Shown here: positions 29,362-60,803 of the stretch, one piece after another
Layout of the letters: each line of letters begins with the position of its first letter
Numbering within the stretch: position 1 is the stretch's first letter
Assembly: GCA_002269645.1 (NCBI GenBank)
Contig: NIVC01000150.1
Location: forward strand, 1-64,000
DNA from: Macrostomum lignano
Lineage: Eukaryota
Direction of reading: 5' to 3'
Length of the DNA: 64,000 nucleotides
Notes under the pieces: generated by a model
What the model was told of the DNA's origin: nothing
Seen by the model: only the letters and a program-made list of their open reading frames with translations
Databases searched by the model: none
Program-made: the position numbers and the translations under genes

Positions 29362-29887
29362 TAAAGTATTGGCTGGCAATAAGATAGGATTGTTGGGAAT
29401 TAATTGGCAGTTAAGCACAGTAGTTAGTTAGAAGAGATTTAGTATATTGTGATAATCAACTGTGCCAAGTAAGGCACCTTCTAGTTGCATTTTATCTTTT
29501 AAGAATAAGAATCATTTTAGGATAGGCTGTTCAACATTAGTAGACAGACTAATCCATAAACTACTAACGTTGCTACTCATAGTAATACACTACTACTTCT
29601 CTAATAAGTAAAATTTTTGACTTATTTTTATGTCAAGCTGCTTATTTAATTTATTTTGTATTGAAGGGGGCAATTTTTTAAAATTTATTAAATAATTTCT
29701 AAATCAGATTTTGAGGCACATTGACTAATCATCTTTTGCTAATTTGACAATTTAAAACAATTTCTAATATAATTTTAAAGTCATATATTTTTAACATTGA
29801 TAGTAAAATAATAAACCTAATTTCTATTATAATTTCCTTAAACTTTCAAATTTTAGATAAAAGCTATAAAAAGCTGTATGGTTTTTT

Positions 29888-30241
29888 TATTAGAGGCAGG
29901 GGGGTTGTGTGCACCCTGGCGCACTTTAGGCAACATAGGCACACAACCGGCGAGAGGCATTACTGCCCATTCCGCTGACTCCCCTGAGCAGGCATACAAG
30001 TGCGCGGATACGTTACGCAGGCACACACTCACACAGGAGTGTAAAGCGGCCCTAACTTTATCAATTGTTAGGCATGTACACTTTACTGCGCCTTGGGGGG
30101 TTGGCTCTTAAGGCCATTAATTGCACAAGCGAGCCAAGCCGAAATTCCAATTCAGCCCCAAATTAATATGGCTGCACTTGGAATCGAGCCTGGGTTGCAG
30201 CACACCAGAGCAGCTGCGCTACCGCTGGGCTACGGCCCCCC
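29888..30241 (-). mobile_element. tRNA-derived SINE, ~354 bp, with 17-bp TSD
   Basis: Minus strand starts GGGGGGCCGTAGCCCAGCGG (A-box-like), has GCTCGATTCC (B-box-like) and ends in an A-rich tail. AAGCTGTATGGTTTTTT is duplicated at 29871-29887 and 30242-30258. Confidence 0.85.
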
Positions 30242-30752
30242 AAGCTGTATGGTTTTTTAACTTTTAGCAAAAGTAGGTAACATATACTACTATTTTTAAG
30301 GATGATCATTGGATGCTGCTACTATAATATGATACTAGTTAAGATTTTTTACTCTCCTTAAAGGAAACAAAAGACAGCTGACCAGTAAGAACTATGCTAG
30401 CAAAATGTCACTTTGGACTTTCTGATTTTTCACCACCCTCAATATTATTTGCCATAACCTACTTGGCCTAACTAGTTCATTTTATAGAAAGGTTTTGCTC
30501 TATATGAGTTGATTTGAGTCAGTTTTATTTGTTGCTTCTATTACATATGACATACAACTAGTATCTTATTGTAGCTACAGATATGGCTATGGGAAGTTAT
30601 AGATATATAGTATTTTAGATAGAACATATATAACTAGTATGGCTATAGAAATGCATAGTTCAAATATCTCATTTTCATATTTAATGATATTGAGGCTACT
30701 TAATTAATAGCTGAGACCTCCATTAAATATAAGCACAATGTATAGTTTAAGT

Positions 30753-31053
30753 CAAGGGTAAGCAAACTGTTTACTTTAAGGGCCAGATGGAGAAACTAGA
30801 GCATGACTGCAGGCTGGAACAGGGAAGAGAGAGGAGAGGGAATGAAGAAAAGATAAGGGAGATAAAAAAGAGAGATGAAAAAACAAAGAAGACTAGAGAG
30901 AGGAGAGATGAGATTAGAGAGAGCAATGCTGAGAAGAGCTATAAATGTTTAGCAAACTAGATTGTTACTATGAGGTTTCAAAGGACCCAAGGGCCAGACA
31001 GAGAGGCTTTGCAAGCTGCATGTGGCCCATGGGCCAAAGTTTGCCAACCCTTG
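30753..31053. mobile_element. hAT (Charlie-like) MITE
   Basis: TIRs CAAGGGTAAGCAAACT / AGTTTGCCAACCCTTG (14/16 match); 8-bp TSD GTTTAAGT / GTTTAGGT. Confidence 0.75.
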
Positions 31054-33540
31054 GTTTAGGTAATAAGACTTAAAGTTAAGAAAAGATAAATTTCTATTAG
31101 TAAATGGCAATTAAAACATTGCTATAATTCTATACTTCACTATTATAAGAAATTAAAAAAAACAAATTGTATACTAAATAATAATATATTGAGCAGTCAA
31201 AAAGCTTTTTTAAGAATTAGAGTTATAGTAACCTTTTGAGATTCTACATTAAAATTCTAATTTGCCAAATTAAAAACCAATATGCCAAGCTATTTATAAT
31301 AAGGATAGGCACCAAAGTCATATAGCCTATGCCACAGGAGCTTCTGGTGCATACAAGGGCCCTTAATACACTTAGTGCATATAAGGAGTCCCTGATACAC
31401 TTGGTATATAATCATGGCATATATTTAGATTTCAATGCATGCAGTGCACTTCTTTAGTGATTTATTATAAAGCACAATTATTTGCTAAACAAACTTACTT
31501 CTTTAATATATAATTTTCATGTATATTGTAAGTTTTAATAGCTATTAGAAATATTGATGAATAAAAATTTAAATAAAAGGTTGCTATCTAGCTATAGGTT
31601 CAAAAAGGAAGATAATATTAAAAATAGTAGATTAAGATTACAAAAAAGTTTTAGATTTTGCAGGTAGACATTGGATAAAGCAAAAAATCAGTTTTTAAAT
31701 GACTATAAAGGTTCTAAAAATAGACAAATAGAAGTCTATCAAATATAACACATTATATGCCTTTTTATATAACATTTTAATTTTTTTTTTCTTTTATAAT
31801 TCTTTGAAAAAATTAACATTTAACTAAGACATCAAGTTTTCAATGAAAAAGTATATTAATAAAAATGCTTAGTTGCCATTTGTTTTTTATAGTTTTTTAT
31901 AGGTTAGGGCACTTGAAATAGTATATAAATTGTGTGCAGATTGTCTCAAAAATATTATAGTGTATACTGTGCCATTTAATTGACTATGGGATAGACTTAG
32001 AAGGCAAAGATGCCATGGCCCTTTTTAAGTTGCAGTTTGCAGCCAAAAAATGTACAATACCTTTTTGGCCAATTATGCATATACACAAGGTGTCCCAAAA
32101 GTAATGTCACTATTGCTTTTTGCCATAAATAAGAATGCATGTTAATTTTTTATATTGGTTGAGTAAGTGGCTTATTTTAGCTTTCATTCACTGAAAGTCT
32201 GATCTTTGCATATACATCCTGCTCTAGGCAGCATGCATTTGTTTGCACACTCTTGACCATAGAAGTACACATGATGCAGTACTTTTATGCTTGTACAAAA
32301 GAATAGCATTTAGAGCAATGCAAATTTAGAATAAGAAGCAGCAGCAGCAGCAAGGCTTGATCTAGCCATGGAGGCTAATATTCACTTAGCAGAAGGGCAG
32401 AGACATACAATTTTTATACTCTGGAGTCTTGGCCAGAAATGCCCCAAAATTCATGACAACCTAACTTGTCTTTAGCTATATAGAAGACTTGTTGAATTAC
32501 CAAATTTGCCTAGATTATTGCCAAATTTGTCCATGTTAAAAACTCTCTACCCTAATTATATTTTAAGCCCCTGATTGACCTACTAAGACACAAAAAAGTT
32601 ATAATAAATTTTTCAATACCTAATTTGTCAACAGACCTAAAATTTAAGAAATGGGAAAATATTAAATTTGTTAACAGTTACAACAAGCTGAGCAAATTTG
32701 TTAACAACAAGACAAATTTACTAAAGTTTATTCTTTAAAGCTTAACACAAGCTTATTGTGCATACATAACCCAAAATCTAATAAATTGGGCAATTGATAC
32801 TATATACATAATACTATGGTCCGGGGTCATTTCATCTGCCACCTTTTTGTCTGCCAAAGAATTTTAGCAGACGAAACAACTTTTTTATTTATGTTTATTT
32901 TGGTTCACTTATTTAGTATTTTAATTTATGTAGGGAATTAAAATAAATTAGTATAAGCAAGTTTTAAGTATGTTTTCTTATTTATATTGATACATTTTGT
33001 TTTTCCTGATACAGGACGAACAATGCCATTGAGGGATGGCACTCGGGCCTGCGCAAGCCTGCTGGTGTCTGCATGAACGTTTTTGCCCTCATCGGTGTCC
33101 TGGCGATCGAGTTTACATTTTCTGTGCCTACAATTTTGATTGCTCCTTTCATTTTACACTTTGTGCATTTAAGCTAGTTGTATTCGTGAATAAATTGCAT
33201 ATGAGTTTACATACACAAAAAAAGAAAGTTGGAAGGAAACTAAATGGTTGGAGATATTTGCTTTTGGCTTTGTGTATTTATATGCAACATATTAGCTCCG
33301 GAACTTTCAGAAATATCCTAGCATTATAATAAATTATAAGTAATAAGACATTTACATTACACTTCCATGCGAAGCTTGATGACATAATTAGTTATTCCGA
33401 TTTATATATTATTTTATATGCAACATATTAGCTCCGGAACTTTCAGAAAAATCCTAGCATTATAATAAATTATAATTAATAAGACATTTACATTACACTT
33501 CCATGCGAAGCTTGATGACATAATTAGTTATTCCGATTTA

Positions 33541-36500
33541 TCTCTACATATAAAAATCAAAACTCTGTGTGTCTGTGTGTGGACAATTTTGATCGCTATG
33601 GACTCCCAAACCGCTCAACCAAATTACACCAAACTTTACACCCACCCTAAACTTACTACGGAGAATGTCTTAGGCTACCTTTTAATTTCCTAGACTCAAG
33701 TCTTCCTACCTAAAAGTACAAAAAACTGCTCAAAATGCGCGATTTTTCACTAAATCCTCCATAGCGCTGCTCCACTTCTATCGATTGTCTTCAAATTTGA
33801 CACAGACAATCTTAAACTATTTTGGCACAATCATGTAAAATTTCGAGTCTGAAAGTTAATCCTGAACGGCGCTATGCACTTTTAAAGTTTGGCTGTTTTT
33901 TCAGCGAGGCAGCCACCCCAACCTCCGCCTGCCTGCCTCTCTTTCCCGATCTGGGCCCAGATGTGTAAAAGGGTTTCAAAATTGACTAACTTTCAGCTGC
34001 CATAAGTTTGCTCCAAGTAAAGCGATTGACTTCAAACTTGACAAAATTCTTCATTGACTTATTTTCTGTCTAAATGTAAAGTTTCAACTCTCTAACTCAA
34101 TCAGAACAGAAACTGTAAACATGTAAAGTTTGTCTGCTTTTTCTGTTGTTTGTGCCACTCACTCACTCATTCCCCCAGAGCCAGACGAAGGGTCAGGTGA
34201 TAGGGCTCAATGTACATAGCGAGTGTACAGTGTTTTGGAATAACTTTTTAATAGCCCTCTCTGTACCCCCGGAGAGGCATGGAGAGGAGAGACAGTTTAG
34301 CGAGAGATTCAAACCACTGTCCTCTGTATAGACAAGTCTGCAGCAGTTTAACTGTGGATGGCAAATCAAGAGTCAAGGCGATGTGGGATGGTTTGTAAAA
34401 ATAGCGAAAAACTAATGAATAACTGTTTACAATGCAATCCTACTAAATTAGTTAGTTACACCATGAAGCTTTTAACATTAAGATTCGCATAAGGTAACTT
34501 TAAAATTTAAATGGCTTCTAAGAAATGCGTATTTTCTTGGTTGTTAGACTACTGCAGACTGTGGTGGTGGAGCTGGAGATACACAAATTCCTCTCAGGGC
34601 TGCTAATTGGCCAGAAAGATGCCGTGATTAAAGCATGAGATGAGAAATGATAACAATGATAGTACTATGTCCCACAAACTGGCTTTCAAAGCAGGGATCG
34701 GCAGATTTTTACCTGAACGGCCAGATAAAGAATCCAGCTCATGGCTGCGGGCTAGATGAGAGTGAAAAGGAAAAGGAATAGACTATTAGAAAGGGAGGAG
34801 GGGCGAGAGGGGGATAGAGAAAAGATAGAAGATATCAGGAGAGACGAGGGGGTGAGGAGAGAGCAGAGAATATGGGAGGAAGAAGCGAGAGAAGGAGAGA
34901 GAGGAGGGAGAGGAAAGAGTAGAGGTGAGAAGAGGGAGAGAGAAGAATGGAGAGAGGAGACATGATCAATGAGAGAGGAAAGTAGAGAAGAGTGAGAAGA
35001 GATGAGGAGAGATTAGAAAGGATAGAGAAGAGAGGAGATAAGAGGGGGAGAGAGGGGAAGAGAGAGGAGTGAGAAGAGAGGAGATAAGAGATGAGAGAGT
35101 TGAGAAAGAAGACAGGAGAAAGGAGAGATAATAGAGTAAAAGGAAGAGGAGGAGAGAGGAAAGAGATTATATTGCAGAGATGAGGGAGATGAAAGGAAAG
35201 ATGAGAGAGTAGAGATGGGAGATGAAGGAAGAGAGAGCAGAATACAGAGAGACAAGAGAAGAGAATAGAGGGGAGAGAGTATACAAGAGGGAAGAGAAGA
35301 GAGGAGTAGGAAAGAGAGGAGTCAGAAGAGGAGAAAGAAAGAGTACACAGGAGATAGGAGAGTAGAGACGATAGAAGAGAGAGGGGAATGAGAGAGCAAA
35401 GATGAGTGTGAACAAAGGATATATGAGAGGAGAGAGAAGAATGGAGAGAGAAGAGAGAAGACAAGAGAGGGAGAGAGTATAGAAGAGGGAAGAGAAGAGG
35501 CGAGAAGAAAGAAGAAAGGAAAGAGAGTCCTGAGTCAAAAAATGGGAAAGAGAAGAATACAAGAGGAGAGAGGTGAGAGAACATGAGAGTAAAAACGACA
35601 GATGACAGAAGGGAGATGAGATAGCGGAAACGAGAGTCAACAGACGAGAGATGGGAGAGTAGAGAGAAAAGAGGAAAGATAAGAAATAAGCGATGAGAGG
35701 TGGAGACAAGGGAGAGATGAGAAGTGAGTGAGGAGAGAGGAGGGGAGGGGAGAGAATCTGAGTGAGGAGAGAGGAGGGGAGGGAAGAGAATCTGAGTGAG
35801 GAGAGAGGATGGGAGGGGAGAGAATCTGAGTGAGGAGAGAGGATGGGAGGGGAGAGAATCGAGAGGCCAGGGGAAATTTGGTGTAAAGGAGAAGATAGGA
35901 GAGGAAAGAGGGGAGAGATTAGAGAGAAGAGAGATGAGAGGAGAGAGAGAAAGGGGGAGAGGAGAGAGCAGATAGAAATGAGAAAAGAGAAGACAGAGAA
36001 GATAAAAGAAGAGAAATGAGAGATAAGAGAGGAAAGAAGAGAAAACTGAGAGGTGAGGGAAGAGACGATAGAAGAGATGAGAGGAGAGAGTAGACAGAGG
36101 AGAGGAGAGAGTTGAGAGAAGAGAGGAAAAAGGAGAGAGGAGAGATGAGGGAAGTGTTGAGAGAGAGTACAGTAAAGAGTGAGAAGAGGGGAGAGGGAAC
36201 AGAGAGTAGAGAGCAGAGAGAAGAGAGAGCAGAGAAGAGAGAGTAGAGAGCAGAAAGAAATGAGAATAGATAAAAGAGGAGAAAGGGGATTTTTGAGATC
36301 AAAGACCAGAAAGAAGAGAGGAGGAAAGAGAAAATAATAGAGGGGAGAGGGAAGAGACGAGAGAAGAGGGGAGAGAGGAGAGAGGAGAGGTGAGAGACGA
36401 GAGAGAAGATAGGAAACAGAAGAGAAGATAGAAGTTTCAAAGGATACAAGGGACATAGGGAGAAGCAGAGGTAGAGGCCAGAGTTTGCCTGACATTCTGG

Positions 36501-36705
36501 GCAGCACCCCAGCTAATAATTTCAATATTTGCCACAAATCCTAATTTTACATGAATGTACTCTATTTTATTTTTAGCTCTATCCTAAATTACTAACTATT
36601 AATAAGTTTTTGTTTAAGTATGACTTCCGATTGTAGAATACACGCAAAAAAAGTTCCGGGGATTGGAGTTCCCCGGGTTCAAAATCCGCGGGTTTCAACA
36701 GCTTG
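33541..36705 (+). mobile_element. Helitron-like non-autonomous element nested in the MULE
   Basis: 5' TC after A; TCTCTACATATAAAAATC...TGTGTGTCTGTGTGT...AAACCGCTCAACC resembles Helitron/DINE-type 5' ends. The 3' end has a GC-rich imperfect hairpin, then CTTG followed by T. No TSD. Confidence 0.55.
34692..36499. mobile_element. hAT-like ends enclosing ~1.7 kb of aperiodic GA-rich sequence
   Basis: CAGGGATCGGCAGATTTT..GGCCAGAT and GGCCAGAGTTTGCC..CTG resemble the ends of the 30753 MITE; no TSD found. Confidence 0.4.
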
Positions 36706-38385
36706 TATATTATATATATTAGCAGACAAAACGACTATATCATATTTTGGCAGACGAAAAGGTGGCAGACGAAAAGGTGGCAGACGAAATGACCGTCAAC
36801 CAATACTATTACATAGTTCAATTGAGTATCCAAATGCAAATGTATCAAGAACTAGGGCCTAGTCTATTAAGTATAGGCCTAGGCCTAGTTTGTATGCTAT
36901 ATATGCTTTATTATTTTTGTTATATCTTTAAAGTGGAGCAGCTATCATTTGAAATTCAAATTTTATCCCAAGTTTTGTTTATTGTCTTTACCATTAACAA
37001 AAGTTTTATTTGAATAACTTCATATTTTAAAGTTCAAAATACGTGCAAAAATAAGGCCTAGTTCCATAGATTTATTGAAAAATTTAGTAGGTTTAAAATT
37101 TACAATTTTTTATAGGTTGTAAAAAATAAATGTCAAATAAAAACCATTTGCCTTTGTTATCTTATATGTAGGCCTTTTTTCTTATGAATAGGGCTTAAGG
37201 CTAAGCTTTTATCTTCCAATTTTTAGCATAGGCCTATAATAAATATATTAGCTAGTCAATAGTTATACTCTTTATAGCATATTGTCAAGTAAATAAATTT
37301 GTTAACAATGCATGGTAAGGTAAAGGTGTTGATGAATTCAGTGGCACCCGGCACAAACATTGCAAAAGTGGCACAGCCAGGGGGCCTGGGCCCCCATAAA
37401 ATTTACGCCCCCTTAATTTCAAAGGAAAAACCCAGCCCTCCTATACCCTCTTCTCTGGGTGCTGACTGCTGAATGGCCCCCATCTCCCAAAAAAATTTCT
37501 GGCTGCACCACTGGTGGCAATTCAAAGTTGGTGGAAATCTTGAAATAAATACTTTTTATATATAGGCCAAAAACATGGCAGCCCTATTGAACAAATTTAG
37601 CATGCAAAAATTATTTTTTGAATTAGGTTCAACTTTGACATGCTAGGCCATACGGTCTACGTCTACAATGCATTACAAGACAACCTAAATAGGCCATCAA
37701 ATACAGTTCTCGATCATCTAAAACACGTTAAACCCCTTGCTAAGTATAGCTAAAGTTATAAAAGATCAAAACAATCTTTGCATAGAACACAGACATTTGG
37801 TATTCACAGACCCGCGGCTTAACTGACAAGTAGCAAGTAGGTTTGGTGGGGCCAGAGCACAGATACTATAAACATCTCACATCTGTAGTTATCTGTGAAC
37901 TGTATGGGCCATGATCATGATCGAGAATCTCGAAAATAGCGAATTTAAATTTTTTAATTTGCTTACGCGTGTCTCATGCGTTGTTCATAATAGTCAAAGC
38001 AAAAGTGTTGTTAGCGTTAAAACAAAAAATATGCCTTTCAAAAAGTCTTTATGACTTTAAAATATATGACTTTAAGCTTTTTAATTGCACACGAATATTA
38101 AGGCGCAAAGTTTTTTGAAGGTTGATAAGATCTATCGTCGCAAGAAATATTGTCCTTAATTAATATTATGTTGTATACAGAAATAATAAATAATCGAAAT
38201 CGAATCTCTCTATTACTGACTATAGATCCCCTGTGCAATAATATGAAATAAATGGGGGATCAAATGATGTCGCCGTTGACCCGGGGAATTAGATCAGGCC
38301 GGAGTATCGCTTTTGCTGCATGTCGACATTATACATGCGCGCAATATGGACGTGTCTGCCCAAGCATCCTCACCGTCACACTCAC

Positions 38386-38592
38386 CCGCTGAATAGTGGC
38401 TGGAATCGAAAAACGTTCATAGCGAAATGTTTGATTGTTTTGAAGAGACCACAATTACTGTTGCGGCTGTAAAGATTCCATCCCACTGGCCGGGAATCGT
38501 ATAGTGAGTTATTGAGTTGTTGAGAGATGAGATTTTCGATTATTCTGCACTCATTGCCGGTCCAATAGAAGGAGTCCGACAGCAAAAGCGAC
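38386..38592 (-). CDS. Candidate orphan exon (symmetric phase 2, 207 nt), product unknown
   Basis: Acceptor GATCAG, strong donor GG|GTGAGT; open frame SLLLSDSFYWTGNECRIIENL...FQPLFS. Confidence 0.4.
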
Positions 38593-38773
38593 CTGATCGA
38601 TACACCGCTTCCATTTCGGGACTAGATTACACCCCCTTTGCGCGTAGGCATGCAATTCGCGATGCACTAGCTTAATATACCCGAGTTAAAATTAAAAAGT
38701 CAGGGGCGCTGATCATGACATCATGTGAATGATCAGGGAGTGCGGAATGTCAGAGTTGCGCCAGCACCAGCAC

Positions 38774-39250
38774 CAGGGTTGACCACAGATACTAGAATAA
38801 CCAGATGGGCCACTCAGCACATTTGCGTGTAAGCTACTTTCAGTTCAGTAGCAAGTTAAACAGAAGCATTTTAATGTATTTTTAAAGCCAAGGCTCATTT
38901 ATTGCTCTTACCCCCCTCCCCCACTTAAACCTCCAACCGCGCCTTTCCACACTACCCCCCTCGCCCCGCCCCACCCTAATTTTTATTGCCTTTCTCGGGA
39001 TTCCAGCCTAAAGCGGCCATGTACATTTCAGTGGACTGGCTAATGTACATTACTGCCGAACCAATTAGCAAGCTGTTTACGCCTGCAAGCTTGGGCTTCT
39101 AAACTTATCAAAGTCATTTCAGCTGCCTTTATTTTTATAAAATAGCTTATGTATACTTCCTTGCTACTGAACTGAAAGTAGAAAGCTGTTTTACTAAGTA
39201 CATATGCCTCCTGAGTGGCCCATCTAGTTATTTAAGTATCTGTGGGGTTG
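38774..39250. mobile_element. Degenerate MITE-like element
   Basis: ~35-bp inverted repeat CCACAGATACTAGAATAACCAGATGGGCCACTCAG versus its near-complement at ~39215-39247; termini imperfect. Confidence 0.45.
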
Positions 39251-39536
39251 ACTAAGCAAAATCCTTAATAATGTTTTGTTATACAAGATTAAGGGAGAAG
39301 ACAGTTTTGGACACTTTTGGGAGGATTGCGCATTATACACAGCTCACTTATTATTTGCAAGTAACATTTATCTTCATATATGACTCTCTTATATGTATAG
39401 CTGACTCTCTTGAGGGTGAATATAGCGATAGGAGTAAATCCATTTACGAGCGTAAGGATCTAATACATTGTTATTTTCGTTTACAACGGAGATACATGTA
39501 CATGCCTGTTGTTGTTGTTGTTGTTAAACGGGGTAC

Positions 39537-39885
39537 CTAGTCCATGTAGTGCTTGACGCGGATCAGCCCAAGGAAGGGCTTTGCCGCTGGAGCAGGGTGA
39601 GTCGATCAAGGGCATGTACAAAGTTTCGCAGACTATAATGGAGTTTTGGCCACTAGTGGGGCTTTGGCTCCAACTGCACGGGTGTAGGTTCACCCAATAC
39701 CGTGGCAGCTCAAACAGTGCAGAGCATGGAACTCTTCCAGAAATACGGGCAACTCTACCAGACGATACAAGATCAACTATGCGGTCATAGAAGCCGCAGG
39801 CTGCACCCTCCGGGCTGAGCACACCATCAGCGACAATCTCATCAGAGACCGTCTTTATATGCCAATACTCGTAGTTATAGGTACA
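39537..39885 (-). CDS. Candidate orphan exon (~116 codons, Cys/Trp-containing), product unknown
   Basis: Acceptor TTCTTAAAG; long non-repetitive open frame; weak donor G|GTACCC. Confidence 0.4.
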
Positions 39886-48621: not shown

Positions 48622-49864
48622 TAACTCGGTGACAAGGAACGATAATGGCTCTTTTAGCCACGCAGTTATTTCTGTAAAAAATGGACGCTTCTCTTGCTTT
48701 TGATTTCAATTTTAAGGGAAAGACTTACGCAAAATATATTTTTGCGTTTTGATGGCTATGGTCCATCCAATCTTTTAGTTCCGTGTTCGATGGTGAGTAC
48801 ATCTGAGAATTTCTGAATGAGTAAATCTTGATTTTGCTGGTTTTTTTAATTTTGACAAGTCGGAACTTACTGAGCTTTGAACCCAAGTCGCTCTCTTTGA
48901 CCAGCCATGGAATTCCAATCTCAAAAAGCCATTCTATCAGTGAAAATCAAAGGTACTCCTCAAGACATCTCAATTAACTATTGACAATCTACTACCAATA
49001 ATAATTCATACTATTGTAGTCGGCATATTCATTTAGCTCATGCTAATCAAAAGCTGCCACAAGTTATTGAAGCTTTTTTCTGCACACTTGACTGTCTCAT
49101 GTCCAGACATGAATTGAAGTACAAGTGCACGAAACTTCAACAGCTCTGCACCTGCTAATAACTCATAGTCTCTAATTCAACTATATGGAATACTATAAGA
49201 TCTGAATTCTGGACAATCAGGTTCTATGAGACCAGCTACCGTTTGCAATCCGGATTTCTCGACGCAGCAGTCCATGCCTCATTAGATTAGATTACTTCCG
49301 TACTCTCATCGTTTGCTTGCCGGACTCACCTGTCCGCTAGACGGATGAGCGTGCAGAGCGACCTCGTGGGGAAGAGACTCAAAGCAATAGAGGGGGTCGA
49401 GCTAGAGACAGAGAGCCAACGCGGGAAGGGCGTGGCCACAAAGGTGATGAAAATCTCTGGAGCAGTAGAAAATGCAGCCAGTCTCCCCTAACTCTCAGTC
49501 TCATTTGTCTGTGCAGTTGGCTGTGTCACTGAGAGACCGTGTAGCGATTTCAAATTTTGCCCCCGGGGATGGGGGGGCAGTGGATTGGCTCATTCGAGCC
49601 TGACTAGTGCACACGTACTGATTAGGCTTCATAATCCTGCGCTGTCCTGGCAATGGCAACTCGCAGTAATTATTAGTTTACGCCTTCTTGACTAACAACA
49701 ACAACAACTGCGATTCATTGGACTGGCTTGAAATCAAAGAAGCAACAGCAGGTTAATCATCATTAAGCAACTAGCCTGGGGCGGTTTTCCTTTGAGCTTA
49801 AAAGCAAAGTCGAGTCAGTGATTATCGCGAATCCCCATCCTGCCTAGTGATTAGCGCCCGAGCC

Positions 49865-52800
49865 ATGTCCTACTCATATTCCAACGGGCGCGCCAGCGTC
49901 CTCGACATGCGGAGCAGCAGCGCAGCTTCCGTTGCAAACGGCATAGCCCCAGCCTTGGTCGCACGCTCGAGCACGTCAATGGTATCCAGCGCTAACTCGG
50001 ACACAAAGGGCCGCATCCAGGTGATTCTGGACACCCAGACGGCCTGCAGACAGGCGCTTGAGGTGGCCAAAATGCTGGCAGTGATCAGCATTCCGGTGAT
50101 AGCGGCTCTGTCCATTGGCACTGTCGGTTTGACGAGGGCATCGAGCACGTTCTCGCAGAGTCAGCGGGCTCAGGTGTCACTGACAGGTGAGTTTGAGATC
50201 TGCTGGCAATCTTATCGACTAAATTTATCTGTAATACTCAGAGATCCGATCAAGTCGTCTTTCTTCGCGAAGGACTTACTTGACTTTTTTGCAGGGGATG
50301 CTCCGGGCATCCGGGTGCAGCGGGGAGGCGTCACCGCCCATTCGACTGACCCCTGACAACCACGGGCAGCTGCGGTGTCGGGCAGGGAGATCCAGGACTG
50401 CCGGAGAGTCCAAGAGAGGCGAAGAGGCGGTTGGTTACTCGTCCGGTAGGCCTTAGGTAGCTAGCCGGAAAAGAGATCCGGATTGAAAGCAGGGCATTCA
50501 CAGATGAAGCGCTCAACACCGGAGAGGCAGAATGGGCGATGCCATTGACCTGAGACCATCATCGCGGCTACCGCCCTGATGCCCTTGCGGTTGAATCCAA
50601 GCAGGACCCAGGCGGGAGAGTGACAGGGAACGCATGGGGTTTTGCCATAAACAAAAATTCACTCGAGAAAATTCCGATTAGGCGTCCGCATCCTTGTACT
50701 TCAAATGTTCATACGTGCAGTCGTCATGAAGGGTGATTAATTCAAAGCGTCATTCAATAGGGAGCGCCATTTCATTCTTTGCCCGATACCGCGCAGCCTT
50801 CTAATTCTTAATATTCTCAATTCTCAAAATGCTCACTCCACTTCTCAGGCAACATGGACATGAGCAAACTGGTCGGCAGCCTGCAGATCGAGCGCGGCCT
50901 GACGGCAACCTTCCTGGCCTCGAACGGCACCGACATGGTGTTTTATCAGCGCATCAAAAATCAACGAGTTATTTCGGATGCCGCTCTTGAGGGCATGAGC
51001 ATCTGGCCTCCCATTGAGTACTTTTACTATAGCAACACCAGCAGCGGTTATACTGTGCCCATCAGGCCGCTCTACACCAAAGCTGACATGGCCGCCAACC
51101 TGGCTTGGTTCCGGCGTCGAGTCGACACCATGTGAGTTCCTTGATGCAGGGTGAGATTGTGACATGCTGAGATCATCATTACTTGGGGTAAGATTGTGAG
51201 ACCACATCACTTGGGGTGAGATTGTGAGACCATCATCACTTGGGGCGAGATTGTGAGACCACATCACTTGGGGTAAGATTGTGAGACCATTATCACTTGG
51301 GACGAGATTGTGAGACCATTATCACTTGGGGTGAGATTGTGAGACCATCATCACTTGGGGTGAGATTATGGGACCATCACCACTTGGGGTGAGATTGTGA
51401 GACCATCATCACTTGGGACGAGATTATGGGACCATCACCACTTGGGGTGAGATTGTGAGACCATCATCACTTGGGGTGAGATTGTGAGACCATCATCACT
51501 TGGGGGTGAGATTGTGAGATTGTGAGACCATCATCACTTGGGGTGAGATTGTGGGACCATCACCACTTGGGGTGAGATTGTGAGATGCTGAGATCATCAT
51601 CACTGGGGGTGAGATTCTGAGATTCTGAGACCATCATCCATCGGGGTGAGTTTCTATGATCGCAAAAACACAAGTGAGATAATTATTAGGGAATTAATTC
51701 TTAGAGATGTAAGTTTTTTATGACGTCCTTTTTCGCAAAGAAAACTATTAAACCTTCCTCATTTCAGTGCTCACGAAATGCAAACAATTGACTCGCCGGA
51801 CTTTTACACTCCCTTCATCAACATGCTGATGGACTGGGGCGACAGCACCGCCATTTTCCCTCCGGGCAGCAAGCTCTGGACTCAAATGCTGGCCTTTTCA
51901 GCCATTCTGCGAGTCACCGAGGCTATCGGACTGCAGCGAGCCCTGGGCTCGTCTTGGTTCATCAACTGCCACCTGCCGCCCGAACTTTTCAGAGTGGGTT
52001 TTGATAGGCCGGCATGCGGTAGCCGAACTTATTTATTTAAAACGTTTACGAGACTGTACAGTCACAATTATGGGTAATGTACATCCCCACAACGGGATGT
52101 ACATTCGGAATCTTCCTACCCCACAACGGGATATGTACATTCGGAAAGAAATCTTTCTACCCCACAACGGGATGTACATTCGGAATCTTCCTACCCCACA
52201 ACGGGATATGTACATTCGGAAAGAAATCTTCCTACCCCACAACGGGATGTACATTCGGAACGAAATCTTTCTACCCCAAAACGGGATGTACCTTCGGAAT
52301 CTTCCTACCCCACAATGCGATGTACCTTCGGAATCTTCCTACCCCACAACGGGATGTACATTCGGAATCTTCCTACCCCACAACGGGATGTACATTCGGA
52401 AATAAATCTTCCTACCCACAACGGGATGTACATTCGGAAAGAAATCTTCCTACCCCACAACGGGATGTACATTCAGAAAGAAATCTTTCTACCCCACAAC
52501 GGGATGTACATTCGGAACGAAATCTTTCTACCCCAAAACAGGATGTACATTTGGAATCTTCCTACCCCACAACGGGATGTACAATCGGAATCTTCCTACC
52601 CCACAACGGGACGTACAATCGGAATCTTCCTACCCCACAACGGGATGTACATTTGGAATCTTCCTAACCACAACGGGATGTAAAATCGGAATCTTCCTAC
52701 CCCACAACGGGATGTACAATCGGAATCTTCTACCCCACAACGGGATGTGCATTCGGAAATAAATCTTTCTACCCCACAACGGGATGTACAATCGGAATCT

Positions 52801-55800
52801 TCCTACCCCACAACGGGATGTTACATTCGGAAATAAATATAATTACAATAATTAAATTCACACGATAAACAAGAATCTTGAATAGTACTGAAGCAACCCT
52901 CAATTCACCCGCAGTACTTTCTGCGCCTCTACGGAACTCAACTAACTGAGTACGACATTGGCAGGGGCTATTGCGCCTCTTGCATCAGCGAGTTCGAGAC
53001 GGTTTACATGAACACCGCCAATTTAGACAGCAATTTAACATTGAAACGGGCAATGATGCTGAACAGCAGCTTCATCGATTATTGCAACACACAGGAGCAG
53101 CAATTCCGAAGCGTGCTGGCTCAGGGCTGGTTTGACAATACCACTGTGCTCATAAATCTCTTCGTTCAGGTGAGTCGCTTGAGATTTGAATGAAATTGTG
53201 CCACATCTCAAATGAAATGGCGCCACATCTCAAATGAAATGGCGCCACATCTCAAATGAAATGGCGCCACATCTCAAATGAAATAGCGCCACATCTCAAA
53301 TGAAATGGCGCCACATCTCAAATGAAATGGCGCCACATCTCAAATGAAATGGCGCCACATCTCAAATGAAATGGCGCCACATCTCAAATGAAATGGCGCC
53401 ACATCTCAAATGAAATGGCACCAATTCTAATATGAAATAGCGCCACCTCTCAAATGAAATGGCGCCACATCTCAAATGAAACGGCGCCAATTCTAATATG
53501 AAATAGCGCCACATCTCAAATGAAATGGCGCCACATCTCAAATGAAATGGCGCCAATTCTAATATGAAATAGCGCCACCCCTCAAAGTAAATGGCGCCCT
53601 CAAAGAGGCGGTCCTAACTACCCCTCAATAAAAATCTCTAGCTGCACTTCTGGCCTAATTAGATGTCGGTCGCGCCTGTTCTAATAAGGAATCTTAATCT
53701 AGAAAATAATTACAGGAAAAAAGCCTCAGCAGGAGATGCATTTCTACTTTCAAAGAAGACGAACGATGCTCGTTGAGCTGATCCGTTTAATTAAGGCTTT
53801 GAGTTAATTGAAATGCAACTAAGCTTATTGATTAAATAAATTCAAATTCCAAGCACACGTTTAATCCCTAGAGAATTAGAAGTTGCTTAATTAGAAGACC
53901 CACTATGCACACAATCCGCAGGTGCGGAACTCCGTCTCGGACTCGATAGTTAGTCAGCTCAAAGCTTCTGTTAACGAGGCCAGAATGAACTTAATCGTGT
54001 TCTCCACTCTGTTCATCATCGTGACGATTCTGTGTGTCAGCCTCACCGTGTGGTACGCCTCCACCATCAGAGCCATGGGCCAGATGATTCTCACCTATGC
54101 CGTAAAACTGCGAAAGAAAATTAAAGCGTTGCAGGTGAGAGATGGCTCCTGCCACTTTTAATGTAATCAGGATGTGATTGCGGTGATCGAATTTTCCATA
54201 ATCCAACCCTGATTCCTAGATGAAAGCCCTCATCCTATATACCGAAAACATGGAATCTCAAGCATTAATAGCTAGTTTATCCACGTAACTACTTTTTCAT
54301 TGGAATTCAAAACTTTCTGATGATCCCAGATCCAATCCCGAGATCCCATCTCCGATCTCGAGATTCTATCTCCAATCCTATGATCCCATCTCTAATCCGA
54401 TATCCCATCTCCAATCCTGACATCCCATCTCCATTCCTGAGATCCCATCTCTAATCCAATATCCCATCTCTAATCCGATATCCCATCTCCAATCCTGAGA
54501 TCTCATCTCCAATCCTCAGTTTACATATCCAATTCCGAGATCCCATATTCAATCCCCAGTTCACATCTTTAATCCCGAGATCCCATCTCCAGTCCCGAGA
54601 TCCGAACTCCAGTCCTTAGATCCTATCTCTTCAATCCGAGATCCCATCTCCAATCTCGAGATTCCATCTCCAACCCTGAGATCCTATCTCCAATCCCGAG
54701 ATCCCATCTCCAATCTCGAGATTCCATCTCCAACCCTGAGATCCCATCTCCAATCCCGAGATCCCATCTCCAGTCCCGAGATCCGAACTCCAGTCCTTAG
54801 ATCCTATCTCTTCAATCCGAGATCCCATCTCCAATCTCGAGATTCCATCTCCAACCCTGAGATCCTATCTCCAATCCCGAGATCCCATCTCCAATCTCGA
54901 GATTCCATCTCCAACCCTGAGATCCCATCTCCAATCCCGAGATCCCATCTCCAGTCCCGAGATCCGAACTCCAGTCCTTAGATCCTATCTCTTCAATCCG
55001 AGATCCCATCTCCAATCCCGAGATCCCATCTCCAGTCCCGAGATCCGAACTCCAGTCCTTAGATCCTATCTCCAATCCCGAGATCCCATCTCCAATCTCG
55101 AGATTCCATCTCCAACCCTGAGATCCTATCTCCAATCCCGAGATCCCATCTCCAATCTCGAGATTCCATCTCCAACCCTGAGATCCTATCTCCAATCCCG
55201 AGATCCCATCTCCAATTCCGAGATCCCATCTCTCCAATCCGAGATCCCATCTCCAATCTCGGGATCCCATCTCCAGTCCCGAGATCCCATCTCTCCAATC
55301 CGAGATCCCATCTCCAGTCCCGAGATCCCATCTCTAATCCCGAGTTCACATCTCCAACCTTGAGATCTCATCTTCAATCCCGAGATCCCAGCTCCAAGCC
55401 CTAAACCCCACCTCCAATCCCGAGATCCCATCTCCAATCTCGAGATTCCATCTCCAATTCCGAGATCCCATCTCTCCAATCCGAGATCCCATCTCCAATT
55501 CCGAGATCCCATCTCTCCAATCCGAGATCCCATCTCCAATCTCGGGATCCCATCTCCAGTCCCGAGATCCCATCTCTCCAATCCGAGATCCCATCTCCAG
55601 TCCCGAGATCCCATCTCTAATCCCGAGTTCACATCTCCAACCTTGAGATCTCATCTTCAATCCCGAGATCCCAGCTCCAAGCCCTAAACCCCACCTCCAA
55701 TCCCGAGATCCCATCTCCAATCTCGAGATTCCATCTCCAATTCCGAGATCCCATCTCTCCAATCCGAGATCCCATCTCCAATTCCGAGATCCCATCTCTC

Positions 55801-58800
55801 CAATCCGAGATCCCATCTCCAATCCCGAGTTCACATCTCCAACCTTGAGATCTCATCTTCAGTCCCGAGATCCCACCTCCAATCCCGAGATCCGAACTCC
55901 AAACTTGCAGGTCAGAACTTCAATGGTACACACAATAGCAGCCAGGAAAATGAATTCAAAGAGTTTATTAAGCTAAATGAGCCAAACTGACTCCCACGTC
56001 CCTACAGGTCGAGAAGAAGCGCACAGAGACGCTGCTGTTCCAGATGCTGCCTCGGACGGTGGCCGACCAGCTAACCAAGGGCCTCACGGTGGAACCTGAG
56101 ACGTTCCAGTGCGTCAGCATCTACTTCAGCGACATCGTCAGCTTCACTGTGATCTCGTCAAGCATCTCACCGATGGAGGTTATCGACCTGCTCAATAGTC
56201 TCTACTCGTAAGCCTTGTATGAGATCTCGCTTGGGATTCGGGATCTCGGGATTGGAGATGGGATCTCGAGATTGAAGATGGGATCTCGGATTGGAGAGAT
56301 GGGATCTCGGAATTGGAGATAGGATCTCAGGATTGGAGATGGGATCTTGGGATCGGGGATGGGATCAAAGAATTGGAGATGGGATCTCGGGATTGTAGAT
56401 GGGATCTCAAGACTGTAGATGGGATGTAGGGATTTGAGATGGGATCTCAGGATAAGAGATAAGATCTCAGGGTTGGAGATGGAATCTCAGGATTGAAGAC
56501 GTGATTTAGGGATTGGAGATGGGATCAAAGGGTTGAAGATGGGATGTAGGGATTGGAGATGGGATCTCAGTATTGGAGATGGGATCTCGATATTGGAGAT
56601 AGGATCTCAGTATTGGAGAGGGGATCTCAGGATTGGAGATGAGATCTTGGGATTGGAGATGGGATCTTGGGATTGGAAATGAGATCTCAGGATTGTAGAT
56701 GGAATCTCAGGATTGTAGATGGGATGTAGGGATTGGAGATGGGATCTCGGGATTGTGGATGTTATTTGGGGATTGGAGATGGGATCTCGGGATTAAAGAT
56801 AGGATCTCGGGATTGTAGATTTTGACCTTGGGATTCTATGGTTCGGTAATTAAGCATCAGAAATTTGAGGAAGACCTCAAAAAGACAGAAAGAGGAAGAC
56901 AGAAAAATAATGGAGCTTCCACTTCTCCATCCGCAGCCTATTCGACAACATAATTGAAATGTACGACGCCTTCAAAGTTGAGACGATCGGCGATGCGTAC
57001 ATGGTGGCCTCGGGAGTGCCCATCAAGAATGGCGATATGCACGCTTGTGAGCCTCTGTGTAGTTGCCGGGGGACTCCCGATGGGATAAAGGACTGCGAGA
57101 TTTGCTAGAAGATTAGTATCATTGGGAGAGGCAGATAGGGAGATGCAGGCAGAGAGGCAGGCAGGGAGATGCAGGCAGGGAGAGGCAGGGAGAGGCAGGC
57201 AGGGAGAGGCAGGCAGGGAGAGGCAGGGAGAGGCAGGCAGGGAGAGGCAGGAGGGAGAGGCAGGGAGAGGCAGGCAGGGAGAGGCAGGGAGAGGCAGGCA
57301 GGGAGAGGCAGGGAGAGGCAGGCAGGGAGAGGCAGGCAGGGAGAGGCAGGCAGGGAGAGGCAGGCAGGGAGAGGCAGGCAGGGAGAGGCAGGCAGGGAGA
57401 GGCAGGGAGAGGCAGGCAGGGAGAGGCAGGCAGGGAGAGGCAGGGAGAGGCAGGCAGGGAGAGGCAGGAGGGAGAGGCAGGGAGAGGCAGGCAGGGAGAG
57501 GCAGGGAGAGGCAGGCAGGGAGAGGCAGGCAGGGAGAGGCAGGCAGGGAGAGGCAGGCAGGGAGAGGCAGGCAGGGAGAGGCAGGCAGGGAGAGGCAGGC
57601 AGGGAGAGGCAGGCAGGGAGAGGCAGGCAGGGAGAGGCAGGCAGGGAGAGGCAGGCAGGGAGAGGCAGGCAGGGAGAGGCAGGCAGGGAGAGGCAGGCAG
57701 GGAGAGGCAGGCAGGGAGAGGCAGGCAGGGAGAGGCAGGCAGGGAGAGGCAGGCAGGGAGAGGCAGGCAGGGAGAGGCAGGCAGGGAGAGGCAGGCAGGG
57801 AGAGGCAGGGAGAGGCAGGCAGGGAGAGGCAGGGAGAGGCAGGCAGGGAGAGGCAGGCAGGGAGAGGCAGGCAGGGAGAGGCAGGCAGGGAGAGGCAGGC
57901 AGGGAGAGGCAGGCAGGGAGAGGCAGGCAGGGAGAGGCAGGCAGGGAGAGGCAGGCAGGGAGAGGCAGGGAGAGGCAGGCAGGGAGAGGCAGGGAGAGGC
58001 AGGCAGGGAGAGGCAGGCAGGGAGAGGCAGGGAGAGGCAGGCAGGGAGAGGCAGGGAGAGGCAGGCAGGGAGAGGCAGGGAGAGGCAGGCAGGGAGAGGC
58101 AGGCAGGGAGAGGCAGGCAGGGAGAGGCAGGCAGGGAGAGGCAGGCAGGGAGAGGCAGGCAGGGAGAGGCAGGCAGGGAGAGGCAGGCAGGGAGAGGCAG
58201 GCAGGGAGAGGCAGGCAGGGAGAGGCAGGCAGGGAGAGGCAGGCAGGGAGAGGCAGGCAGGGAGAGGCAGGCAGGGAGAGGCAGGCAGGGAGAGGCAGGC
58301 AGGGAGAGGCAGTCAGGGAGAGGCAGGCAGGGAGAGGCAGGCAGGGAGAGGCAGGCAGGGAGAGGCAGGCAGGGAGAGGCAGGCAGGGAGAGGCAGGCAG
58401 GGAGAGGCAGGCAGGGAGAGGCAGGCAGGGAGAGGCAGGCAGGGAGAGGCAGGCAGGGAGAGGCAGGCAGGGAGAGGCAGGCAGGGAGAGGCAGGCAGGG
58501 AGAGGCAGGCAGGGAGAGGCAGGCAGGGAGAGGCAGGCAGGGAGAGGCAGTCAGGGAGAGGCAGGCAGGGAGAGGCAGGCAGGGAGAGGCAGGGAGAGGC
58601 AGGCAGGGAGAGGCAGGGAGAGGCAGGCAGGGAGAGGCAGACAGGGAGAGGCAGGCAGGGAGAGGCAGACAGGGAGAGGCAGGCAGGGAGAGGCAGGCAG
58701 GGAGAGGCAGGCAGGGAGAGGCAGGCAGGGAGATGCAGGCAGAGAGAGGCAGGCAGGGAGATGCAGGCAGGGAGAGGCAGGCTGATTAATCAATATGCCA

Positions 58801-60285
58801 CTATAGTATTCATCTATTCGGGATAATTTTCCCTTCGCAGCGGAGATCGCCTCAGTGGCGCTGGACATTCGCGACGCAATGATGGAATTTTCCACCGGAG
58901 CCCTGGAAAAAGGCCGCGTGAAAATTCGCATTGGGATTCACTCAGGTGAAAAAATCATTTTGATTCAAAGTACCATCTGCTATTGGCTAATATTGGCTGA
59001 TTTAATTTTTCAGGAGCCGTGGTTGCCGGGATTGTGGGCACCAAGATGCCGCGCTACTGTCTTTTTGGCGAGACGGTGCACATCGCCAACTGCATGGAGT
59101 CCACCGGGCAGCGTAGGAAAAAAATTGCAATAAAATGCTCTAGTATTACTATAAGTATGAGACGAGTTTTTTTCACAATTTTTTTTCAGCATCGAAAGTC
59201 CAGATTAGCGAGCGAACTTTCGCCCTGTTGGAGATCACCAACCAGTTTGAGCTGGAATTTCGCGGCGAAGTCGAAGTTCAGGTAGGAAAAAATGATTCAG
59301 ATTTTCGACAACGTTTCTCAGAAATTTCCTGTGCCTACGAACGTATTGCAGCGGCGAGATAAGGACTAAATTTCCGTTTTTAGCACTAAATTTACAACTT
59401 ATTACTCTCTGGACTTTGAGATTGCAGATTGAGCAATCTAGGATTCCCTGACTGGGAATCCCTTACTGGGATTCCATTGACTGGGATTTCCCTGACTGGG
59501 ATTAACCTGACTGGGATTCCAGATCATCTGGTTGATTTCCACTGACTGGGATTCCCCTGATAAGGATTCCCCCGATTGGGATTCCACCGACTGGGATTTC
59601 CCTGACTAGAATTGCCCTGACGGGGATTTAACTGACTGGGATTCCACCGACTGGGATTCCACCGACTGGGATTCCACCGACTGGGATTCCACCGACTGGG
59701 ATTCCTCTGACTGGAATCCCATTGACTGGGATTCCACTGACTGGGATTCCCCTGACTAGGATTGCCTTGACTGGGATTCTCCTGATTGGGATTCCCCTGA
59801 CTGGGATTCCCCTGACTGGGATTCCCCTGACTGGGTTTCCACCGACTGGGATTTCCCTGACTAGAACTGCCCTGACGGGGATTTAACTGACTAGGATTGC
59901 CTTGACTGGGATTCTCCTGATTGGGATTCCCCTGACTGGGATTCCCCTGACTGGGATTCCCCTGACTGGGTTTCCACCGACTGGGATTTCCCTGACTAGA
60001 ATTGCCCTGACGGGGATTTAACTGACTGGGATTCCACCGACTGGGATTCCACCGATTGGGATTCCCCTGACTGGGATTGCCCTGACTGGGATTGCCTTGA
60101 CTGGGATTCTCCTGATTGGGATTCCCCTGACTTGGATTCCCTAACTGGGATTCAGTTGACTGGGATTTCTAATTATGCTTCATTTGTCTATGGTTTTTAT
60201 TGAGAATAAATAACCTATTAAACCAATATTTCTTCACTTTTAGGAGAAAAAGATGAAGACTTACTGGCTGCATGGGAAAATTTGA
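49865..60285 (+). CDS. NIT-domain transmembrane guanylyl cyclase (NIT-GC), ~648 aa. Exons 49865-50186, 50849-51131, 51768-51993, 52915-53169, 53922-54134, 56008-56207, 56937-57046, 58841-58945, 59014-59112, 59190-59281, 60244-60285
   Basis: All ten introns GT-AG and phase-compatible. Order: TM1; NIT signature [18 protein letters not shown] / GLQRALG / GWFDNTT; TM2; signalling helix [10 protein letters not shown]; catalytic motifs [37 protein letters not shown]. No kinase-homology domain. Confidence 0.92.
51150..51650. repeat. ~29-bp intronic minisatellite (TTGTGAGACCATCATCACTTGGGGTGAGA), NIT-GC intron 2
   Basis: Visible tandem. Confidence 0.9.
52070..52835. repeat. ~34-bp intronic minisatellite (ACCCCACAACGGGATGTACATTCGGAATCTTCCT), NIT-GC intron 3
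   Basis: Visible tandem with length variants. Confidence 0.9.
53195..53600. repeat. 22-bp intronic minisatellite (GCGCCACATCTCAAATGAAATG), NIT-GC intron 4
   Basis: Visible tandem. Confidence 0.9.
54335..55900 (+). repeat. ~20-bp intronic minisatellite (GAGATCCCATCTCCAATCCC), NIT-GC intron 5
   Basis: Visible tandem with higher-order blocks. Confidence 0.9.
56225..56830 (-). repeat. Same ~20-bp unit in reverse orientation (GGGATTGGAGATGGGATCTC), NIT-GC intron 6
   Basis: Consensus is the exact reverse complement of the intron 5 unit. Confidence 0.88.
57122..58783. repeat. 14-bp intronic minisatellite (GCAGGCAGGGAGAG), NIT-GC intron 7
   Basis: 14-aa periodicity (3 x 14 bp) in the pseudo-ORFs. 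Confidence 0.95.
59440..60170. repeat. 15-bp intronic minisatellite (ACTGGGATTCCCCTG), NIT-GC intron 10
   Basis: Visible tandem. Confidence 0.9.
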
Positions 60286-60803
60286 TGGGATGACGTAATT
60301 CATCTGGATTCGTTGAAAACTGCTATAAAATAATGAAACAGTGGAGCTTTAAGTCGTAATACGCTCGTACACTACTATTTTACACTTTCTAGAGCAGTAG
60401 TATGTAGAATTTTTTGGCCGATCAAGTTTTTTTTTCATTTTTAGGCTCAATAAAACAAGGGATACTATTTTTCAGTTGAATTTTTCTATTTTTAACTTTT
60501 CAATTAGAAGGAAAATTAGTACATGTTTTACTGTACAGTACAGTACAGTTCCGCACGCACTCATGCAGATTTTTAGTACATGTAGCCATTTAGATTTACA
60601 ACTACACGATATTTTGAGAAATACACTGTGAAAATTTGTCTGTTTACCTGCGGGTGAACTTTTCGATGAGAAAAATGTTGAATCACAAAAATAGTTTGCT
60701 TTAATTGTGTCATTTTTTTACAAAAACGTGATGTGCCAGATTGCTTTTATGCTCGTAGATTGATGAGTTAGCAGCTGTTGAGTCAGAAAGGAAAGGCAGC
60801 CAC

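Follow-up and report, generated by a model that had tools for sequence, protein, structure and literature searches.

Guanylyl cyclases that carry a NIT sensor domain (NIT-GCs) are known from placozoans and bilaterians (Moroz et al. 2020, PMC7400543; Jokura et al., bioRxiv 10.1101/2023.08.02.551600). The family, recognised recently, is large in many invertebrates, and one member has been assayed. This member, Platynereis NIT-GC1, has a conserved cyclase domain and makes cyclic GMP (cGMP) alone in COS-7 cells (bioRxiv 10.1101/2023.08.02.551600); it is the only one for which a cGMP response to nitric oxide (NO), nitrite or nitrate via the NIT domain has been shown, in cells. Here we report on a NIT-GC gene of the flatworm Macrostomum lignano, located at 49865-60285 (+) of a 64-kb stretch (64,000 nucleotides of contig NIVC01000150.1) that is referred to below as the window. 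Our results favor, with moderate confidence, the reading that its predicted product serves in a membrane NIT-domain guanylyl cyclase as a subunit of the alpha type, unable to act autonomously.

The division of catalytic labor on which this reading depends has been described for CYG12, where Asp482, Asp527 and Arg571 come from monomer A, and Asn599, Arg603 and Lys640 (in the beta7-beta8 loop) from monomer B. The Asp pair binds metal, Arg571 the triphosphate, Asn599 orients the ribose, and Arg603 acts on the transition state (PMC2576301). An earlier note on this DNA, made from the sequence alone, had split the residues between protomers in this same, established way. That a dimer may hold a single active site is well known from soluble guanylyl cyclase (sGC), transmembrane adenylyl cyclase (tmAC), ODR-1/DAF-11 and NeoR/RGC. 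ODR-1/DAF-11 of C. elegans is an obligate heterodimeric receptor guanylyl cyclase (GC) in which each monomer supplies essential residues to a single site (PMC5225109). Neorhodopsin (NeoR) of the heterodimeric rhodopsin-guanylyl cyclases of chytrids, with T455 and K459 in place of the NxxxR motif, is inactive alone and donates its Asp pair to the single active site of the NeoR/RGC heterodimer, whose degenerate site modulates activity (PMC12264004). An obligate-heterodimer membrane GC, as suggested for this locus, is thus not new in principle, as ODR-1/DAF-11 (PMC5225109) and NeoR/RGC1-2 (PMC12264004) are precedents. Heterodimers or degenerate catalytic sites are not mentioned in either of the papers that define NIT-GCs (PMC7400543; bioRxiv 10.1101/2023.08.02.551600), and the accessible portions of other literature naming a NIT domain together with guanylate cyclase apparently do not address them.

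The gene model was rebuilt by reading the region 49500-60600, translating it in all frames and joining the exons (Table 1). From ATG to TGA the gene comprises 11 exons encoding 648 amino acids (aa); the coding sequence of 1947 nt has zero internal stops and all ten introns are of the GT...AG type, so that the earlier description of an intact gene with 11 in-phase exons holds. When the product was searched against the window with tblastn, ten of the 11 exons were mapped, exon 11 (42 nt) being the one without a match, and nothing matched elsewhere in the window.

Pfam assigns aa 114-371 to the NIT domain (PF08376; E 1.8e-23, 84.6 bits vs a cut-off of 24.9) and aa 462-646 to Guanylate_cyc (PF00211; E 6e-61), whereas the HNOBA match (aa 422-455) covers just the C-terminal 34 residues of that family, a coiled coil. 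By Kyte-Doolittle hydropathy the protein has two hydrophobic segments and no more, one at aa 63-91 and one at aa 381-412, on either side of the NIT domain. Five N-glycosylation sequons (aa 133, 170, 317, 327 and 352) all fall between these two transmembrane (TM) segments. The NIT domain is predicted to be extracellular, and the N-terminus and cyclase cytosolic, because the NIT domain is located between the TM helices and bears all five sequons; this topology is based on the hydropathy scan rather than on a dedicated topology predictor. The layout from N- to C-terminus is TM1, NIT, TM2, signalling helix and class III cyclase domain.

The architecture of a NIT-GC is complete in this protein: the NIT domain, two flanking TM segments, and a receptor-GC-type cyclase with the GTP-specifying Glu and Cys. 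The LQIERG and LQRALG motifs common to other NIT-GCs are present as well. The best full-length matches are NIT-GCs 32-38% identical over 82-94% of the protein length, from a bivalve, a brachiopod, an annelid, echinoderms and a tardigrade, all with canonical motifs. Among proteins of solved structure, human GC-A is the best match to the cyclase domain (E 5e-70), which scores 239 bits with GC-A vs 156 with sGC alpha1. Judged by sequence comparison, the cyclase domain is of the receptor-GC type, and its likeness to sGC alpha is convergent rather than by descent. Features of the sGC alpha family are missing, in that Pfam gives no H-NOX hit and two TM segments are present. The protein also lacks matches to PF01094 and PF07714, both of which are carried by the non-NIT receptor GC matches, and so differs from the ODR-1/DAF-11 type.

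Catalytic residues were compared position by position in an alignment to human GC-A. All monomer A residues (Asp475, Asp519 and Arg566) are kept, and so are the base-specifying residues of monomer B, Glu515 (in VETIGD) and Cys587 (in RYCLFG); FSDIVSF, IGDAY, RIGIHSG and the GTP-specifying Glu and Cys, all listed as retained in the earlier note, were each found at these residues. The ribose-orienting Asn is replaced by His594 (59079-59081) and the transition-state Arg by Cys598 (59091-59093), and NxxxR thus reads HxxxC. The same motif carries the further changes Asp591Glu, Thr595Ile and Ser597Asn. It had been placed at 59068-59102; the motif is real but starts one base earlier, at 59067. Towards the C-terminus, KGKGKV of GC-A is aligned to QEK-KM, the first KGKG Lys being replaced by Gln635. 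The reported QEKK does span exons 10 and 11, with Q635 in the former and E636-K638 in the latter. Loss of the triphosphate Lys is likely, yet less certain than the losses of Asn and Arg, because K637 and K638 remain after a one-residue deletion that shortens the loop. The key-residue string is DEDRC-EHINC-QEKK. The claim that exactly the beta-side residues are lost is therefore correct for Asn, Arg and probably Lys, but not for the beta-side Glu and Cys, which are kept. An autonomous homodimeric cyclase carries six canonical residues in one chain, namely two metal-binding Asp, two base-specifying residues, the ribose-orienting Asn and the transition-state Arg, of which Asn and Arg are absent here, whereas the alpha-type (C1-like) pattern, an Asp pair and phosphate-binding Arg without NxxxR, is what the protein displays. 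Neither a six-frame motif scan nor tblastn with canonical peptides detected another exon in the window that encodes GDTVN..SRMES or KGKG. Mutually exclusive splicing of a canonical exon 9, 10 or 11 was considered and ruled out, as the window holds no spare exon.

The losses are concentrated in these motifs. We compared the protein with 119 canonical cyclase domains, in which 71 columns are conserved at ≥90%. The canonical motif residues are fixed in this set (97% at the position of Ser597), although their fixation is partly a selection effect, since the set was defined by these same residues. Seven of the 15 conserved columns in the NxxxR and KGKG motifs differ in the M. lignano protein, vs four of 56 elsewhere, all four conservative (T to S, V to A, Y to F, I to V). 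The latter fraction (7%) lies above the 90th percentile of the canonical members (5.5%) but below their maximum (12.5%). The p value of 0.001 that Fisher's test gives for a clustering of the changes should be interpreted as illustrative, the motif having been picked post hoc and the set defined by the same residues. As far as such alignments can tell, the loss is site-specific and unlike general decay, and the remaining cyclase domain is under visible constraint.

A family survey placed the gene among similar proteins. A profile of six canonical NIT-GCs was searched against 1.84 billion cluster representatives, and the best 150 profile matches were combined with the matches of a first protein search, giving 90 NIT-containing proteins with complete domains. 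Their cyclase domains were aligned to one hidden Markov model and the key residues were read out per protein. Canonical proteins make up 61 of the 90. Fifteen, the M. lignano gene included, are alpha-like (both Asp kept, Asn and/or Arg lost), 11 are beta-like (an Asp lost, Asn and Arg kept, usually with KGKG), and three have lost both half-sites. Alpha-like members nearly always keep FSDIVGFT, and their NxxxR motif drifts toward GxTVxIAxK, in forms that include GETVNIASKMES, GESVTIASKMES and GTTVLIAGYMEN. The NxxxR core is intact in beta-like members, where it mostly reads GDTVNTASRMES, and KGKG is present wherever the C-terminus is modelled; their Asp-side replacements include FSGIVGFN, FSNVVGFT, VGDTYM and VGSKYM. 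These replacements are of the same kinds as in human sGC, where the alpha1 motif is GNNVTLANKFES and beta1 has FSGIVGFN, VETVGDKYM and GNTVNLTSRTET. Alpha-like proteins occur in nemerteans (Lineus, Tubulanus), Lingula, Mytilus, Saccostrea, sea urchins, three hemichordates, crustaceans and a priapulid, and beta-like ones in Tubulanus, Lineus, Owenia, several molluscs and a tardigrade.

The FSGIVGFN shared with sGC beta raised the possibility that the beta-like NIT-GC domains descend from sGC beta. This was ruled out by their far higher score with GC-A (235 bits, vs 158 with sGC beta1), and because the beta-like domains are of the receptor type by score, their likeness to sGC is convergent. The Asp pair is kept in 15 of the 18 members that lack N/R vs 61 of the 72 in which N/R is intact; conversely, N/R is kept in 11 of 14 Asp-less members vs 61 of 76 Asp-intact ones. 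Since retention of one half-site is equal whether the other half is lost or intact, the pattern suggests that the surviving half-site remains in use across the family. A new metal or S-nitrosation site formed by His594 and Cys598 (i, i+4) was also considered, and is disfavored by the lack of these residues in the other alpha-like members.

Both classes co-occur in single genomes. In Tubulanus, the alpha-like P0072 lies about 170 kb from the beta-like P0119 on one chromosome. P0119 and its tandem neighbor are both beta-like, each without both metal-binding Asp, and are predicted to be proteins that cannot bind metal on their own. Lineus has the alpha-like P0046 and P0106 (both strongly so), a third, divergent alpha-like member, and the beta-like P0070. 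The genes of this beta-like pair lie tail to tail on Tubulanus polymorphus OZ123227.1, at 10001-13138 (+) and 14544-17450 (-) of the extracted stretch, one with FTGIVDF and VGSKYM and the other with FAGIVEF and VGSKYM; both retain GDTVNTASR[MI]ES, and KGKG is present in P0119 and in its neighbor. In Owenia fusiformis, a beta-like and a doubly degenerate NIT-GC (P0083 and P0123; accessions CAH1773880/CAH1773883) are on the same chromosome and only three accession numbers apart, which suggests a local cluster of degenerate NIT-GC paralogs.

The M. lignano gene and the alpha-like Lineus P0046 paired in 89 of 100 neighbor-joining (NJ) bootstraps, and the branch of the former is no outlier (67th of 90 by root-to-tip distance). 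Their replacement residues differ, EHINC in M. lignano vs TLIGY in Lineus P0046, which is compatible with an ancient loss and later drift of positions that would no longer be needed. The tree, a crude NJ one, also suggests that the alpha-like state may have arisen several times independently.

According to the reading that we favor, a homodimer of the M. lignano protein would have two crippled sites and be nearly inactive alone. Through its signalling helix and cyclase interface the protein would pair with a NIT-GC that carries N/R/K, either canonical or beta-like. Such a heterodimer would possess one competent GTP site, made up of Asp475/Asp519 and Arg566 of this protein together with the Glu/Cys, Asn, Arg and Lys of the partner. 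A degenerate, pseudo-symmetric second site would remain, possibly with a regulatory role as a nucleotide pocket of the kind known from sGC, tmAC and NeoR/RGC. Two different NIT sensors would thereby be joined to one catalytic output. Because flatworms are reported to be without nitric oxide synthase (NOS) and the predicted position of the NIT domain is extracellular, the ligand would more likely be nitrate, nitrite or NO of environmental or microbial origin than self-made NO. The report on NOS covers platyhelminths including M. lignano (PMC10728431), and makes the previously proposed link to endogenous NO doubtful.

The alternatives concern, on the one hand, whether the gene is a functional one. 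It could be a young, unexpressed or decaying copy, an incipient pseudogene whose frame is not yet broken in the repeat-rich, duplicated M. lignano genome. In favor of this, the collections contain neither a protein nor a transcript-derived entry for the gene, it is not modelled in the NCBI annotation, minisatellites make up about 60% of its span, and inverted arrays flank exon 6. However, absence from databases is weak evidence, the public contig NIVC01001456.1 stopping about 10 kb before the gene, and a decaying copy is disfavored because the rest of the domain, the NIT motifs (LQxERG and QRALG) and all splice sites are intact. The open frame of 1947 nt with its ten canonical introns, the confinement of substitutions mainly to two motifs of an otherwise conserved domain, and the alpha-like state of a sister protein from another phylum also speak against decay, which we consider quite improbable. 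An assembly or sequencing artefact that conceals a canonical gene seems to us extremely improbable. The locus does lie among long tandem repeats, which are difficult to assemble, but at least seven independent codon substitutions are found in unique exon sequence outside the repeats, with reading frame and splice sites intact. Five of the changes are separate single-base codon changes within 12 codons of the motif, and are therefore no sequencing slip.

On the other hand, an intact gene could encode a protein that works differently. As a dead pseudo-cyclase it would contribute no necessary half-site and act as a dominant-negative or attenuating subunit that halves or silences the canonical NIT-GCs with which it pairs, or else as a NIT receptor or scaffold without enzymatic function. 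With N and R lost, a homodimer is expected to be inactive (residue roles in PMC2576301), no beta-like partner is known from M. lignano, and with a fully canonical partner the heterodimer would merely have one site instead of two; a degenerate site in the chytrid enzyme lowers activity allosterically (PMC12264004). Yet a dead domain needs neither Asp475, Asp519, Arg566, Glu515 and Cys587 nor 52 of 56 conserved core columns, and family-wide the members without N/R retain the Asp pair as often as active ones do. We think this explanation unlikely, and it overlaps with the one that we favor insofar as an alpha-type subunit with a canonical partner would be contributor and attenuator at once. The protein could also be an autonomous homodimeric cyclase with non-canonical chemistry, in which His594 would take over from Asn as the ribose ligand and K637 or K638 would replace the lost Lys, with activity reduced or differently regulated. 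His is able to donate or accept hydrogen bonds like Asn, two lysines are left in the beta7-beta8 loop, and all substrate- and metal-binding residues are present. What makes an autonomous enzyme hardly probable is Cys598, since Cys, unlike the transition-state Arg that it replaces, is unable to stabilise the pentavalent phosphate. This Arg of NxxxR is considered crucial, and without it NeoR is inactive alone (PMC12264004); it is present in 119 of 119 canonical domains, by selection of that set.

Several observations weigh against an alpha-type subunit in need of a partner, and our results should be interpreted with some caution. Mutual exclusivity of the two types of loss is unsupported, with three double losses vs 2.8 expected under independence among the 90 proteins. 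Other alpha-like members mostly have Ser/Thr/Gln and Lys at the positions of His594 and Cys598. The survey is built on predicted proteins, an automated alignment, the best-scoring 150 cluster representatives and a crude NJ tree. tblastn of the product revealed no second cyclase gene or partner paralog in the 64-kb window, and the protein collections contained no NIT-GC from M. lignano or another flatworm (full-length search, and search with the NIT and TM region) and no ortholog closer than 38% identity (full-length search). The NIT-GC gene itself is without a transcript or protein record in the searched collections. The proposal in the earlier note, an alpha-like subunit that requires a partner, is accordingly upheld in part: the residue pattern, the family classes, the co-occurrence of both degenerate classes in Tubulanus and in Lineus, the alpha-like Lineus sister and the constraint on the domain speak for it, whereas a partner was not found.

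Table 1. Exons of the M. lignano NIT-GC gene and mapped protein features (window positions).
Feature	Position	Strand	Content
Exon 1	49865-50186	+	aa 1-108; cytosolic N-terminus (predicted), TM1 about aa 68-90 (50066-50134)
Exon 2	50849-51131	+	NIT domain begins; LQIERG motif aa 119-124
Exon 3	51768-51993	+	NIT domain; LQRALG motif aa 257-262
Exon 4	52915-53169	+	NIT domain, second helical bundle
Exon 5	53922-54134	+	NIT domain end; TM2 about aa 386-411 (53991-54068); signalling helix begins
Exon 6	56008-56207	+	Signalling helix (EKKRTETLL...); first cyclase segment with FSDIVSF; Asp475 = 56131-56133
Exon 7	56937-57046	+	VETIGD/IGDAY segment; Glu515 = 56980-56982; Asp519 = 56992-56994
Exon 8	58841-58945	+	RIGIHSG; triphosphate-binding Arg566 = 58927-58929
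Exon 9	59014-59112	+	KMPRYCLFG with Cys587, then degenerate helix-alpha4 motif
Degenerate motif replacing GDTVNTASRMES	59067-59102	+	Alignment to GC-A; codons read directly
Exon 10	59190-59281	+	Last residue Gln635 (59279-59281) at position of first KGKG Lys
Exon 11	60244-60285	+	E636, K637, K638 (60244-60252), one-residue deletion; conserved TYWL C-terminus; stop codon
NIT sensor domain	50866-53948 (span includes introns 2-4)	+	aa 114-371; Pfam PF08376

The gene is rich in repeats. In seven of its ten introns a minisatellite, different from one intron to the next, takes up the sequence (units of 29, 34, 22, 20, 20, 14 and 15 bp). Tandem repeats account for 59.5% of the span of the gene and, over the entire 64-kb window, for 37.6%. 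A 20-bp minisatellite, GATCCCATCTCCAATCCCGA, occupies introns 5 and 6 (54322-55902 and 56240-56820) in opposite orientations and thereby flanks the 200-nt exon 6, with about 79 copies of GATCCCATCTCCAATCCCGA and about 29 of its reverse complement. The inverted arms around exon 6 reach up to 287 nt at 84% complementarity. Pairing across exon 6 in the pre-mRNA could promote its skipping, with a frameshift, or back-splicing to a circular RNA.

Elsewhere in the window, many long open reading frames (ORFs) are merely frames that stay open across minisatellite arrays. An intronless homolog of SLC35E1, a TPT/EamA transporter of 440 aa from the first ATG, lies at 28039-29361 (-) and is 100% identical to M. 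lignano 'BOX15_Mlig029801g1, partial'. The public M. lignano contig that carries this gene, NIVC01001456.1, can be aligned with positions 20713-39610 of the window (99.9% identity in unique sequence, 93-96% across repeat-bearing stretches) and ends near position 40,000, which leaves the cyclase locus outside this contig and its NCBI annotation; the window would thus represent another, more contiguous assembly or haplotype. That annotation places a gene with an eIF4E domain (509 aa) at about 19.5-23.2 kb (-) of the window, and a 606-aa gene beyond it. An ORF at 14599-16578 (-) / 15830-18495 (-) has a proline-rich, WW-like region, WLCLWDPANAAYYYQSVRTGEAQWEFPG, and continues into an array of an about 28-aa repeat, PPRSSVAGPASQILSCWASLPDPQLLGQ, which is open for hundreds of codons in several frames; its coding extent is putative.

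Taken by itself, the window supports a modest claim, that of a further degenerate cyclase subunit, and the family-wide alpha/beta pattern is the more interesting lead. We tentatively extend it to the hypothesis that NIT-GCs of Bilateria may form obligate alpha/beta-like heterodimers with one active and one regulatory site, evolved repeatedly and in part anciently, and convergent on sGC residue for residue. The M. lignano gene would then be the alpha half of a pair that acts as a coincidence or ratio detector of environmental nitrate, nitrite or NO, not as a receptor for NO made by the animal. Should half-site subunits that function only in pairs indeed make up a third of the family, single-gene assays and knock-downs of NIT-GCs would be misread, and the number of distinct receptors would be set by pairings rather than by gene count. 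The one-active-site design of sGC would have arisen independently on a membrane receptor scaffold, offering a test case for the evolution of asymmetric cyclase dimers. Moreover, a flatworm reported to be without NOS retains a gene for NIT-based cGMP signalling, which points to the sensing of external nitrogen oxides.

Compared with known systems, the M. lignano protein resembles those of the NIT-GC1 type in architecture, Pfam domains and NIT motifs, but unlike NIT-GC1 it has neither the Asn nor the Arg of NxxxR, and its host is a flatworm reported to lack NOS. As in sGC alpha (GUCY1A1), the Asp pair and the phosphate-binding Arg are present in the M. lignano protein and Asn, Arg and, probably, the KGKG Lys are gone, and its replacements parallel the alpha1 motif GNNVTLANKFES (Thr to Leu/Ile, Ser to Asn, Arg lost). 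In contrast to sGC alpha, it is a predicted membrane protein that has a NIT sensor and lacks H-NOX and PAS domains. ODR-1/DAF-11 have an ANF-receptor ectodomain and a kinase-homology domain, whereas the M. lignano protein has a NIT domain and no kinase-homology domain. The resemblance to NeoR is that of a sensor-coupled membrane GC subunit without NxxxR, the partner of NeoR carrying a different sensor. The two differ in that the sensor is NIT rather than rhodopsin and the host animal rather than fungal, and in that the NeoR heterodimer is experimentally established whereas that of M. lignano is inferred.

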